64,000 nucleotides of DNA from Macrostomum lignano (GCA_002269645.1 NIVC01002331.1:62001-126000); one strand, 5' to 3'. Counted from the stretch's first letter, positions 6,083-14,133 are shown. Notes: generated by a model not told the origin, from the sequence alone. Translations and numbers: made by a program.

Positions 6083-9000
6083 ATGAACATTGACGTAATC
6101 GGTCGTGTCCGGCCGTCCATCCGAAACGAGGGCCCCTGCACCCTGGCCATCGGCTCGGACAACCGGGTGTCATCTCGGCCGGGCGGCCAGTCATTCGTGT
6201 TCCAGCACCTGTACCAGCAAGGTTCCAGCAATTTAGACGTCTACAGTCGGCACGTGGAACCGATGGTGGACATTTTCCTGGCTGGCTACAATGTCTGCTT
6301 CATGTGCTTCGGCGAGAGCGGCTCGGGAAAGAGCTTCACCTTAGCTGGCGATTCGTCTATGAAAAATGGCCTGGTGCCTCTGGTGCTGGCCTCTCTGTTT
6401 GCCAAGCTGGACCCAGGTGAGATTGCTGAGTCACTGCTGAATCACTGCTGAATCACTGCTGAATCACTGCTGAGTCACTGCTGAGTCACTGCTGAGTCAC
6501 TGCTGAGTCACTGCTGAGTCACTGCCAATTCTTGGTGGCAACTCTTGATAAGCGATTTATGATGGGCGATTTTTATGGGCGATTTCTGATGGGTGATTTT
6601 TGATGGGTGACTTTTGATAGGCGATTTTTTATAGACGCTTCTTGGTGAGCGATTCTCAGTGAGAGATTCTCAGTGAGCGATTCTCAGTGAGCGATTCTCA
6701 GGGAGCGATTCTCAGTGAGCGATTCTCAGTGAGCGATTCTCAGTGAGCGATTCTCAGTGAGCGATTCTCAGTGAGCGATTCTCAATGAGCGATACTCACT
6801 GAGCCATTCTAAATGAGCGATTCTCAATGGTCAACTATTCTATCTGCAAATACCATATGCTTAAATATGTGCTCACCCAGTTCTCTGCTTACAAATATCT
6901 CTAACTTTGATTGGCATATTTATCACATTCATGTAGCAATGCACTTTTAACTTTAATAGAATGCTACATCTATTTTTGACAACTGACTAACTTCATTAGT
7001 TAGCCCATGCATGCTATAATTGAAACTGAAAAACTAATTTGTCATTTTCAGCCGATATTCTTCCCGGACGCAGTGAGTAAAGCGATAATTGTCATTTCTA
7101 TTTATAACACGGTGATGGCCAAAAATCTCTGATGGAAATCGCGTTTTCATTTTTTTGGTTTACAATAATTTTCTGTCTGATGCGTACCAGCTGGAATGGC
7201 ACTGCCAATGCGATTGCTAATGCGCCACTGTTTCTGTCTGTGCCATCAATGCCCCACCTGCCATTGTGTTCCACTTTTCCTCTGCCTGTTAGGTTGCTGC
7301 TGTTTTTGTCTCAATTTTATTCTATTTTATATAGTCTGTCCTTGTGTATATCTTCTGTCACCTTATCTACCTCATCTGTCTCCTTATCTACCTCAAGTGT
7401 CTCCTTATCTACCTCACCTGTCTCCTTATCTACCTTACCTGTCTCCTTATCTACCTCACCTGTCTCCTTATCTACCTCAAGTGTCTCCTTATCTACCTCA
7501 CCTGTCTCCTTATCTACCTCACCTGTCTCCTTATCTACCTCACCTGTCTCCTTATCTACCTCACGTGTCTCCTTATCTACCTCACCTGTCTCCTTATCAA
7601 ACTCACCTGTCTCCTTATCTACCTCACCTGTCTCCTTATCTACCTCACCTGTCTCCTTATCTACCTCACCTGTCTCCTTATCTACCTCACGTGTCTCCTT
7701 ATGTACCTCACCTGTCTCCTTATCTACCTCACGTGTCTCCTTATCTACCTCACCTGTCTCCTTATCTACCTCACCTGTCTCCTTATCTACCTCACCTGTC
7801 TCCTTATCTACCTCACCTGTCTCCTTATCTACCTCACGTGTCTCCTTATCTACCTCACCTATCTCCTTATCTACCTCACCTGTCTCTTTATCTACTTCAC
7901 AGTTCCCTTATCTACCTTTTCTATCTCCTTATTTCCCTCACCTGTCTTCTTAGCTACCTATTCTTCCCTCTTATCTACCTTATGTTTTCTTTCATCTGTA
8001 GCAAAATAATTGCGATAGATAATCAAAGATTTCCTCAGTACAATACTCAGGCCTTAGTCAAGTCTTAATTACTGGCTAATAAGTCTCTTAGCACAAAAAA
8101 GGCAATTTCGAATCCTCCTTTGATAACCGCACTAATTATCCAGCGTAATATGCAGCCAATACCTACCTGGAGTAGCAGACAGAAAATTCCTCATCCTCAT
8201 TATAGTCAGCGATAACCAGTCAGCTTTTTGTGTTGCAACAGACCTTTATGACAAGATAATCTGCCCTCCATGACACATTCAGTGCTGAAACGAATCATAC
8301 TTCTGCCAGGTAAGGCACTGGACCTGTTAAAGGTAAATTGGATGTACTTTCAAGCACAGCGGATTCTTCCATCAGTTGAACTGTCTGTCCTTCAATATTT
8401 ATAAACTGACTGTCTTTGTTTAAAAATTCACTTCAAATTTGTCAGTTAAAACCTTTCGCGTCTTTAGCGTTTGCGCCTACAGCATAATATTATGATTAAT
8501 TAACTTTATGCTTCTATTTTGTGACACGATTTGTTTATGTATCCCAAATATTTATTAGGCAAATGGGAGACTGCTCGCATGCAAACATTGCATTGCAAGC
8601 ATATAGCAAAATTAATTCAACGGGATTGTTTCTCTGTACTTTTATATCATCATTTTTATGAGATACTGGGTTTTGCTCAGCGGAAATGAAGCATAAACCG
8701 CGGCAACTGACTGGGCTTATGTCGCTTTTTATAAAAGTGAAGTAAATAGAACAGAGATCAATTCAAGATGAGCCAAAATCCTACGATTTTTATTTAGAGA
8801 CCTAAAGGCGACAGTTTCCAGACCAAAAATAACAAAAAGGCAATTTTTTTGCATTATTTTTAGGGCAAAATTTATCCCTTTTGCTTTTATCGAATCAACA
8901 GGAGTTGCTTTCTCTAAAGTCCGTTAAGCCACAATCCCTTCCCGCAGTTCCCAAGTCAAAATGAGCCACAATCATTTTCTTAGTCTACTGAGCTACAACC

Positions 9001-12000: not shown

Positions 12001-14133
12001 ACTCTTGACCAATTAGACATATGCTGACCCACTCCTGACCCATTAGACACATTCTGACTCACTCCTGACCCATCTCAACCTTGCGCGCCAGATCCTGGAG
12101 CTGGAGAACCAGCTGCTGGAGGCCAGCATGCGAGCCGAGCAGTGGCACGCGGACGCCATGAAGCTGCGTCAAACCGAGGACGAGCGAAAACAGCTGGCTG
12201 ACGAGTTCGTCAGAATCAAGGAGCAGCTGCTCACCCAGACCAGGGACTACGACGCCCTGGTAGCCAAGAACGAGGAGCTGAGCATGGAGCTGCTCAATCT
12301 GGTGAACACGAAGAACGAGCTGCTGAAGCAGCGGGACAACATGTCCCTGGCCGGCATGCGCGGCGCACAGCATGATCCGCAGGCTGAGATGCAGCGAATC
12401 AAAGCCATGATAGCCAAGACTCCGGCCGAGATGGCAGCTGCTGCCGGCGGCGGCCGGGGCTCTTCAAGGAGGCAGCAGCTGCCGGCTGAGCGGCGGATGC
12501 TGCGGACTGGCGAGCTGGACAGAGAGCTGGAAGGCCTCCGCGGCCAGTACGACAAAGACCAAGAGAAGCTGAGGGACAGAATGTGAGTGCGCACTTCAAG
12601 CGACATTGTCACACAACCGGCGAGAGGCATTGCTGCCCATTCCGCAGACTCCCCTGAGCAGGCACACAAGCGCGCGGATACGTACGCAGTCATACGCACA
12701 GGCACACACTCACACAGGAGTGTACAGCGGCCCTAACTTTATTTATCGATGACCCTACAGAATCTCCCCAGACACAATGAACCTACAGAATCTCCCCAAA
12801 CACAATGACCCTACAGAATCTCCCCAGACACAATGACCCTACAGAATCTCTCCAGACACAATGACCCTACAGAATCTCTCCAGACACAATGACCTCCAAC
12901 CGCCCCGCCTGCAGAAACTTCCTGTTAAAGGAGCTGCAAGACACCCGCCAGCTGGCCAAGAATCGCCTTCGCGAGATCTCCGAAGTCAAGGCGGCCCTCG
13001 TGACGGCCCGCAGCGACGCCCAGCAGATGCAACTGCAGTACAACCGCTGCCAGCACAAACTGAAAGACCTCCAAGAGGAGTACAAGTCCCGTCTGGGTCG
13101 CTACGTCCAGGACATCGCCGAGCATGAGGACAGCCGCGGTGGCGGCGGCGGCGACGGTGGCAGCCTGCGCGACTACGTGACTTCGATGCTGGCCGATCTG
13201 CGGCGGGCGCACAAGTCGCGCGAGGAGCAGCTGGCGGCGGCGGCGCAGGAATTCCGCGGCCGAATGATGGACACCGCCAGGGAGCACGAGAGGCTGCTGG
13301 TGGCGCACGAGAGCCTCAGACAGCGCGTGCTGGAGAGCGCGCCGGATGTCGATCCCGGCCCGCCCATCGACCAGCTGCGCCTCACGGACGAAGAGCTGAT
13401 CAGCGGCACCCAGTCGGAGCTGCTGCGCCTCACCGAGGAGCTGACCAGGGCGCGCAAGGAGGCTGCCAACCTGAAGCTGCGGCTGGGCGCCCGGCCGGAC
13501 ACGGGTGAGCGGCAGCGACTGGCCGACGGAGAGGCGCATGACTTCCAGGATCTGCGCCGACAGATCCGCGACTTCAACAACTCGGTGCAAGCCGAGCTGG
13601 AAACTGAGCGGGCCGGCCTCATCGCCAGAAACCAGGTGGGCGTTGGTAAATTAGTTGGTAAATTAGTTAGTTAGTTAGTTAGTTAGTTAGTTAGTTAGTT
13701 AGTTAGTTAGTTAGTTAGTTAGTTAGTTAGTTAGTTAGTTAGTTAGTTAGTTAGTTAGTTAGTTAGTTAGTTAGTTAGTTAGTTAGTTAGTTAGTTAGTT
13801 AGTTAGTTAGTTAGTTAGTGAGTTAGTGAGTTAGTCAGTCAGTCAGTCAGTCAGTCAGTCAGTCAGTCAGTCAGTCAGTCAGTCAGTCAGTCAGTCAGTC
13901 AGTCAGTCAGTCAGTCAGTCAGTCAGTCAGTCAGTCAGTCAGTCAGTCAGTCAGTCAGTCAGTCAGTCAGTCAGTCAGTCAGTCAGTCAGTCAGTCAGTC
14001 AGTCAGTCAGTCAGTCAGTCAGTCAGCTCAAACCGCTCACCTCTCGCAGGCCCTGGAGGAGCAGCTCCGAGAAGCCAGGCGGAAGCTGGAGAAGCAGCAG
14101 CGCAGGCCACGCGATTCGCAGCCGTTGGAGTAG
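6083..14133 (+). CDS. Divergent kinesin motor domain fused to CCDC78/DUF4472-like coiled-coil region; 7 coding exons, ~887 aa
   Basis: Exons 6083-6416, 9708-9892, 9962-10284, 11139-11664, 12092-12582, 12915-13635, 14050-14133. All introns are GT-AG and phase-compatible; total 2664 nt, divisible by 3. Kinesin motifs: IDVIGRVRP, P-loop GESGSGKS, VEIYQEKVRDL, DLPGSE, LTRLLQEELGGNCRT. The C-terminal part (TEEEKLKVGKALVELEIENNKLKEELEAQKFEMGNRILELENQLLE; LRDYVTSMLADLRRAHKSREEQLAAAA...HERLLVAH) resembles CCDC78 as recalled, not database-checked. Confidence 0.88.
6422..6830. repeat. Compound intronic array: 11-bp GCTGAGTCACT, degenerate GGCGATTTTT units, then 14-bp GTGAGCGATTCTCA
   Basis: Begins ~5 nt after the donor at 6417. 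Confidence 0.9.
7358..7960. repeat. 21-bp minisatellite CTACCTCACCTGTCTCCTTAT
   Basis: About 27 copies, kinesin intron 1. Confidence 0.97.
8985..9475. repeat. 27-bp minisatellite GCTACAACCCCTCCCCAGTTAATTTAA
   Basis: About 18 copies, kinesin intron 1. Confidence 0.97.
10335..11138. repeat. ~16-bp minisatellite ACCCACCCGTCACCCA filling kinesin intron 3
   Basis: The array runs directly into the acceptor CAG at 11136-11138. Confidence 0.95.
11690..12075. repeat. 30-bp minisatellite ATGCTGACCCACTCCTGACCCATTAGACAC filling kinesin intron 4
   Basis: Degenerate at the 5' end, more regular at the 3' end. Confidence 0.9.
12750..12895. repeat. 28-bp minisatellite GACACAATGACCCTACAGAATCTCCCCA
   Basis: About 5 copies just before the acceptor at 12914. 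Confidence 0.9.
13664..14026. repeat. Compound microsatellite (GTTA)n then (GTCA)n
   Basis: Fills kinesin intron 6, with GTGA transition units near 13818-13829. Confidence 0.98.

Follow-up and report, generated by a model that had tools for sequence, protein, structure and literature searches.

A kinesin-headed CCDC78 orthologue of the flatworm Macrostomum lignano as a candidate ciliary-tip microtubule anchor

Structure of the gene

A stretch of 64,000 nucleotides (nt) from the genome of Macrostomum lignano (GCA_002269645.1, NIVC01002331.1:62001-126000) was analysed. It is called the window here, and positions are counted from its first letter. We were interested in a gene on its plus strand, at 6083-14133, in which a kinesin head is joined to a coiled-coil tail of the CCDC78 type. 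The window is eukaryotic DNA, with GC-rich coding blocks and introns between them filled with tandem repeats. An earlier reading of the sequence alone (the original prediction) had assembled the gene from seven segments in a single frame, and this frame was recovered as an open one. All segment borders are AG/GT, the ATG lies at 6083 and the TAG at 14131-14133, and the spliced segments amount to 2664 nt, or 887 codons with zero internal stops. The first AATAAA 3' of the stop is found at position 14557.

The seven segments are real, but the exon count had to be revised, because a microexon of 21 nt (7052-7072) had been missed. The microexon and the flanking split codons yield ADILPGRS instead of Gly112 of the seven-exon product. 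The resulting eight-exon product of 894 amino acids (aa) equals residues 7-900 of PAA49779.1 (BOX15_Mlig030815g3, M. lignano), the top database match, with no mismatch. In PAA58797.1 and PAA76679.1, from two other M. lignano contigs, all 898 aligned residues are identical to the PAA49779.1-type product. The microexon is skipped in the UniRef models, and the seven-exon frame corresponds to the skipping reading of A0A1I8HTF7 over the same stretch; the microexon may be alternatively spliced.

Both domains that had been predicted for the protein were found by Pfam. In the 887-aa protein, Kinesin (PF00225) was matched with 183.3 bits (cut-off 29.3; E 7.7e-54) at aa 32-318, covering profile positions 37-318/327, and DUF4472 (PF14739) with 76.3 bits (cut-off 26.6; E 3.5e-21) at aa 422-523, covering 2-107/107. 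Microtub_bd was matched with an E value of 9.5e-13. Chance is excluded by the strength of the Kinesin and DUF4472 matches. In the 894-aa product, a kinesin-fold head (aa 1-~330) is followed by the neck motif VNTFPILND, by DUF4472 (aa 429-530) within coiled coil, and by a CCDC78 tail that runs to residue 894.

The prediction that head and tail are encoded together was upheld by exon 11139-11664, which spans both without need of the 11664/12092 junction. Searched by itself, this exon matches Kinesin profile positions 281-321/327 (5.7e-5) and DUF4472 profile positions 2-35/107 (3.9e-10). Since one exon runs from the last part of the motor into the first part of DUF4472, the head-tail join is independent of splicing. 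Moreover, a transcript-like Logan contig of 3032 nt from a bivalve-like orthologue carries a single uninterrupted open reading frame of 916 aa with both domains. Transcript-level support for the joined gene comes from this contig and from the M. lignano annotation in GenBank, which was built on RNA-seq-guided transcript assemblies (PMC5730564). Head and tail are one gene.

Relationship of the tail to CCDC78

The tail was compared with CCDC78 proteins by BLASTP. Residues ~380-889 aligned with CCDC78 of Spea bombifrons, a motor-less frog form, at 36% identity over 532 aa (E 9e-92), and the two were collinear over the whole tail, in agreement with the CCDC78-type tail that had been proposed. The Spea protein begins just past the position matching the flatworm neck. 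When the head was included, the alignment with axolotl CCDC78 extended over 914 aa at 35% identity (E 2e-176). A homologue search with the tail only (query aa 343-894) returned 54 matches, all with DUF4472 and mostly named CCDC78, with E values from 1e-40 to 1e-98 and typically >85% coverage of the tail. The motor-less CCDC78 proteins of frogs, turtles, squamates, birds and one teleost were recovered in this search at 1e-40 to 1e-82 and 31-39% identity. Mollusc proteins and a protein clustering with CCDC78 of the brachiopod Lingula, all named CCDC78 or CCDC78-like, showed 40-42% identity over the full length. Among the matches of the global searches, made with the full-length protein and with the tail, the only flatworm proteins were models of the M. 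lignano gene itself.

These alignments indicate that the tail is CCDC78 along its entire length, beyond the DUF4472 signature alone. Judged by them, the locus is the M. lignano CCDC78 orthologue in its ancestral full-length form, and we count orthology to the named CCDC78 proteins as established. With vertebrate CCDC78, the flatworm tail shares DUF4472 and the EEYxSRL, HKSREEQLA and DPGPP blocks, and with the CCDC78 of axolotl, caecilians, lungfish and sharks the protein also has the kinesin head in common. By contrast, the CCDC78 proteins of frog, mouse and human, which are the vertebrate forms studied so far, are headless.

A further difference lies at the C-terminus. The motif YIDKHLxRYKQEIxRLRKLLG, kept in the orthologues examined from molluscs, echinoderms and vertebrates, is absent from the M. 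lignano product. A tblastn search of the window with ten orthologue C-termini gave no credible downstream exon for the YIDKHLxRYKQEI motif; a candidate on the minus strand at 32339-32437 was dismissed (E 0.39).

Distribution of the kinesin-headed form

To see how widely the architecture is distributed, 1.84 billion representatives were searched exhaustively with the tail by HMMER (E <= 1e-3), and proteins of at least 640 aa were counted as long. There were 324 matches. Of the 47 long ones, 46 carried DUF4472 and 41 carried Kinesin. A search with the full-length protein found Kinesin plus DUF4472 in molluscs, an annelid, a starfish, caecilians, axolotl, lungfish and a green alga, mostly under the name CCDC78 or CCDC78-like. 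Further animal members were found in Nematostella, the jellyfish Sanderia, the crinoid Antedon, the sea urchin Lytechinus, the hemichordate Glandiceps, amphioxus and carpet sharks, and the protein of the Lingula cluster also belongs here. Outside animals, members were present in two Salpingoeca species (choanoflagellates), Mantamonas, Cyanophora (a glaucophyte), Guillardia (a cryptophyte) and Aphanomyces (an oomycete). Every named family member had an N-terminal motor match or a kinesin Pfam domain.

The RefSeq CCDC78 and CCDC78-like proteins of molluscs, Nematostella, amphioxus, sea urchin and starfish, together with the Lingula cluster, are collinear with the flatworm protein, ~870-930 aa long and equipped with Kinesin and DUF4472; identity to the spiralian ones is 38-42% across 98-99% of the protein. 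Compared with the other animal orthologues, the M. lignano protein differs in the microexon insert, in a Gln at the position of the switch I arginine, in NQSV versus SDSK in alpha5, and in its divergent C-terminus. The Tetrahymena thermophila protein I7LVY1 has been described as a kinesin with an additional CCDC78 domain (Legal et al. 2023, PMC10522465), and Hong et al. treat it as a CCDC78 homologue (PMC12796433). According to these descriptions, it resembles the flatworm protein in having a kinesin head and a CCDC78-type coiled coil; it differs in being a ciliate protein of 1066 aa, for which, compared by description, only distant similarity is expected.

Since Kinesin plus DUF4472 is spread over animals, choanoflagellates, other protists and a green alga, the fusion is ancestral and the motor-less form is derived. 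Two origins had been offered for the architecture, and the survey leaves the ancestral one standing and removes the lineage-specific fusion. Full-length CCDC78 is thus kinesin-headed across eukaryotes, and it is the motor-less vertebrate form, well studied as it is, that departs from the rule.

Vertebrate Ccdc78 has been stated to be without a kinesin domain (PMC12796433), and the original prediction had likewise taken it to be motor-less. This holds for anurans, reptiles, birds, the echidna and one teleost, in which motor-less CCDC78 was found. On the other hand, a kinesin domain is present in the RefSeq CCDC78 of sharks (carpet sharks), lungfish, caecilians and axolotl (P0020-P0024, P0174). 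These entries indicate that the absence of the kinesin domain is true for part of the vertebrates only, and the view of all vertebrate CCDC78 as headless is corrected by the survey.

It is conceivable, although we would lean slightly against it, that the proteins form an ancient Kinesin-DUF4472 family of the cilium tip with a 'parked' head, possibly reaching back to the last eukaryotic common ancestor, and that frog, mouse and human CCDC78 are derivatives that arose after independent loss of the head in teleosts, anurans and amniotes. If so, sharks, lungfish, caecilians and salamanders would have retained the head, with the P-loop already decaying in the head-bearing amphibians, and M. lignano, which can be made transgenic and has a multiciliated epidermis, would be a practical animal for asking what the head contributes.

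The novelty implied by the original prediction did not hold. The gene is already in GenBank, the architecture is common, CCDC78 or CCDC78-like annotations exist in many animals, and I7LVY1 has been published (PMC10522465, PMC12796433); neither gene nor architecture is new, and the locus itself, which is annotated and belongs to a known family, carries little weight. No papers on DUF4472 or Mlig030815 turned up in the literature searches, and CCDC78 was mentioned in none of the flatworm papers listed there. Modest by-products of the survey, and not discoveries at the locus, are the motor-bearing vertebrate CCDC78 proteins, the family-wide non-canonical switch I described below and a loss of the head that seems to have occurred repeatedly.

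State of the kinesin head

The head (aa 1-365) was modelled with AlphaFold2, with a predicted local distance difference test score (pLDDT) of 83.0 and a predicted template modelling score of 0.86. Only aa 113-130, a variable surface loop around the microexon insert, fell below pLDDT 50. All 50 matches listed in a Foldseek comparison with the PDB were kinesin motor domains, from many subfamilies, with target-normalised TM-scores (template modelling scores) up to 0.89. The best PDB match by sequence was Kip3 (4.1e-30). An attempt to assign the head to a subfamily from its neighbours in the PDB, in sequence or in fold, was given up, as kinesin-8, -1, -12, -3, -2 and -7 score alike (~100 bits each by sequence). 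Because the sequence and fold matches are spread evenly over the subfamilies, the head appears to belong to no well-known kinesin subfamily. Kinesin-17 is described by Wickstead et al. (2010) as restricted to cilia and of no known function. Kinesin-17 identity was considered as a lead and tentatively rejected: two Kinesin-17 entries in the supplementary table of that paper have very strong, near-canonical KISc scores (449-500), against 183 bits in Pfam for the divergent flatworm head, and this comparison of scores argues against it.

The nucleotide-binding motifs of the head were then compared with the kinesin consensus. The P-loop GxxxxGK[ST] is intact (GESGSGKS, aa 77-84), and so is switch II DxxGxE (DLPGSE, aa 239-244). 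Switch I SSRSH, on the other hand, is not matched: the flatworm protein has SNQSA (aa 209-213), in which Gln takes the place of Arg and Ala that of His, and in the HMMER alignment the query 'lasnqsavvlq' stands opposite 'evssrshavlq' of Kip3 (7rs5). SSRSH was present in 0/22 of the Kinesin-DUF4472 family members aligned. The switch I arginine is retained in some members (starfish, Nematostella, Cyanophora, green alga), and vertebrates have His or Gln. Caecilians and axolotl show decayed P-loops (GEWDSRKS, GGWDSKKS, GETDSRKS); the lungfish retains GETGSGKS. Switch II varies across several lineages, with ELPGLE in molluscs, and in Aphanomyces both the P-loop and switch II are altered. Two elements are strongly conserved in the family: alpha5, with the block Y..S.LT.LL...LGGN, and the neck, whose motif NFPxxND is nearly invariant.

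In kinesins, the switch I arginine forms a salt bridge to the switch II glutamate and is required for hydrolysis, as known from kinesin mutagenesis. Given that SSRSH was found in no member examined, ATPase activity of the head is doubtful. On this reasoning, rather than from a result, it is more likely that the head binds microtubules and probably nucleotide and would hydrolyse the latter poorly. The non-canonical switch I in every examined member predicts a head that anchors and does not walk.

Proposed function at the ciliary tip

We consider it probable that the protein, as the CCDC78 orthologue, acts as a dimeric microtubule anchor and bundler of the ciliary tip with a poorly hydrolysing, 'parked' head. 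It would dimerise via its coiled coil and would grip axonemal microtubules by two types of contact, the kinesin head, through its conserved, microtubule-facing alpha5 block, and the CCDC78 tail, which in frog is able to bundle microtubules alone. At the distal tip of the motile cilia of the multiciliated epidermis, it would anchor and bundle plus ends or the central pair, being itself static or slow, and contribute to tip organisation and cilium length. The head would be a nucleotide-binding, poorly hydrolysing kinesin rather than a transport motor, as suggested by a switch I that has Gln in place of the SSRSH arginine. Two microtubule-binding modules would explain how some vertebrates could lose the head. 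The relevance of such a protein lies in the building of the extreme distal tip of motile cilia and in the search for candidate loci of motile ciliopathy.

Vertebrate CCDC78, originally linked to deuterosomes, is regarded in recent work as a microtubule bundler of the extreme ciliary tip and forms a distal tip module with CCDC33, the localisation and the CCDC33 interaction having been demonstrated for frog, mouse and human only (PMC12796433). I7LVY1 is depleted from Tetrahymena cilia lacking CEP104/FAP256 and has been put forward as a component of the cap complex that would bind central-pair microtubules (PMC10522465). Given that vertebrate CCDC78 is placed at the ciliary tip and that flatworms are reported to be without deuterosomes, a tip anchor is, by analogy, more likely than a centriole-amplification factor.

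The immotile or slow ciliary-tip kinesin KIF7 (kinesin-4), whose head acts as an organiser of plus ends and the tip and not as a transporter, offers a comparison, as a functional analogue only; it belongs to a separate kinesin family and is without DUF4472.

Several points weigh against a parked tip anchor. The M. lignano head keeps the P-loop, switch II and the neck motif, which would fit a working, if unusual, ATPase too. The YIDKHLxRYKQEI motif is missing from the flatworm protein, so its partner binding may differ. The putative role at the tip is transferred from distant orthologues, of which vertebrate CCDC78 also marks deuterosomes and I7LVY1 is likened to the flatworm protein by published description.

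A conventional, active plus-end-directed kinesin on axonemal microtubules, engaged in transport or length regulation and using the CCDC78 coiled coil as stalk and cargo tail, is the strongest alternative, and we regard it as unlikely. It would be in keeping with the N-terminal position of the motor, the family-wide neck motif, the intact P-loop and DxxGxE switch II of M. lignano and the confidently predicted, complete kinesin fold. However, switch I SSRSH is missing in all members examined, with Gln for the arginine in M. lignano and His or Gln in vertebrates; decay of the P-loop or of switch II is seen in several head-bearing lineages (caecilians, axolotl, molluscs, Aphanomyces); and the whole head has been lost in several vertebrate groups with tip function retained (PMC12796433).

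Somewhat less likely still is the role favoured by the original prediction, a microtubule-tethered centriole-amplification factor of the deuterosome type in multiciliated cells. M. lignano does have a multiciliated epidermis, and GFP-Ccdc78 (green fluorescent protein fusion) labels Xenopus deuterosomes (PMC12796433). In the account of Klos Dehring 2013 that is relayed by PMC10522465, vertebrate Ccdc78 is located at deuterosomes and its knockdown results in fewer centrioles. However, flatworm multiciliated cells are reported to build their basal bodies near fibrous granules and not at deuterosomes, and depletion of the single planarian CEP63/Deup1 orthologue was without effect on cilia-based locomotion (PMC4799839). 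Together with the placement of vertebrate CCDC78 at the tip (PMC12796433) and the protist members, this leaves the amplification role weak. The same architecture occurs, as listed above, in choanoflagellates, Mantamonas, Cyanophora, Guillardia and an oomycete. These lineages are flagellates or producers of flagellated zoospores, and to our knowledge they do not amplify centrioles. Occurrence in such protists points to a cilium-intrinsic ancestral role. Roles in centriole amplification and at the tip are mutually compatible, and for the proposed tip anchor a basal-body role is possible as a secondary or alternative function.

Public models and features of the window

Two public UniRef models at the locus appear to be mis-joined. 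A0A1I8HTF7 (973 aa) bypasses the stop and runs on into 15672-15953. A model of 515 aa that is annotated as a protein kinase A (PKA) regulatory subunit and ends in kinesin exon 1 (P0028) was rejected as a mis-join. Since only its C-terminal ~150 residues map to the window (residues 367-397 at 3639-3731, and exon 1), the PKA gene does not lie there. These visible mis-joins, and the polycistronic precursors that M. lignano makes and resolves via trans-splicing (PMC5730564), might suggest that neighbouring kinesin and CCDC78 genes had been misread as a single gene, but such an artefact is scarcely credible, with the join of motor and DUF4472 lying inside one unbroken exon, the kinesin domain kept in 41/47 long representatives, the joined form encoded by a transcript-like contig and the same joined product in three GenBank accessions.

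The features of the gene and its surroundings are collected in Table 1. Each long intron is dominated by its own tandem array, and the sole repeat-free intron is 9893-9961 (69 nt).

Table 1. Exons of the kinesin-CCDC78 gene, tandem arrays and neighbouring features in the window
Feature	Position	Strand	Details
Exon 1	6083-6416	+	Start ATG 6083-6085; donor GT at 6417
Exon 1 motifs	6101-6115; 6311-6334	+	GRVRP (RxRP-type, N-terminal); P-loop GESGSGKS
Microexon (exon 2 of 8)	7052-7072	+	21 nt, in-frame; cag/CCGAT...CGCA/gtgagt; AG acceptor, GTGAGT donor
Exon 3	9708-9892	+	Central beta-sheet portion of motor core
Exon 4	9962-10284	+	Switch I SNQSA 10046-10060 (non-canonical); switch II DLPGSE 10136-10153
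Exon 5 (bridging)	11139-11664	+	Motor end: alpha5 LTRLLQEELGGN and alpha6; first coiled coil
Exon 5, further features	11275-11301; from 11560	+	Neck motif VNTFPILND; first 35 DUF4472 residues
Exon 6	12092-12582	+	Remaining DUF4472 (up to 12292), more coiled-coil tail
Exon 7	12915-13635	+	CCDC78 tail; blocks EEY(K/R)SRLxRY(V/I)QD(I/L)A, HKSREEQLA, DPGPP (alignments to frog and axolotl CCDC78)
Exon 8	14050-14133	+	Protein C-terminus ALEEQLREARRKLEKQQRRPRDSQPLE, then stop TAG 14131-14133
Array 5' of gene	4500-4924		
Array 5' of gene	5467-5997		Ends ~85 nt short of ATG
Intronic array	6424-6826		11- and 14-mers
Intronic array	7355-7959		21-mer x29
Intronic array	8991-9473		27-mer x18
Intronic array	10339-11131		16-mer x51
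Intronic array	11755-12073		30-mer x11
Intronic array	12749-12894		28-mer x5
Intronic array	13665-14026		AGTT/AGTC x90
Neighbour, seemingly unrelated	16916-19217	-	Cys-loop ligand-gated channel exons; Neur_chan_memb 8e-17, Neur_chan_LBD 7.6e-7
Neighbour, seemingly unrelated	33858-34442	-	S4-domain exon, 3.7e-11
Neighbour, seemingly unrelated	42102-42653	-	Mob1/phocein exon, 2e-57

The locus was also found on a second contig, NIVC01003790.1 (Mlig_3_7 contig), which matches positions 1-14200 of the window with ~88-97% identity in flanking and intronic DNA and with arrays of different length; for non-coding DNA, identity was put at ~96-97%. The gene spans 8069 nt in the window and 7983 nt in NIVC01003790.1. 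The contig is either a further copy of the locus or the locus as given by another assembly, which would fit the duplicated DV1 karyotype or a different assembly.

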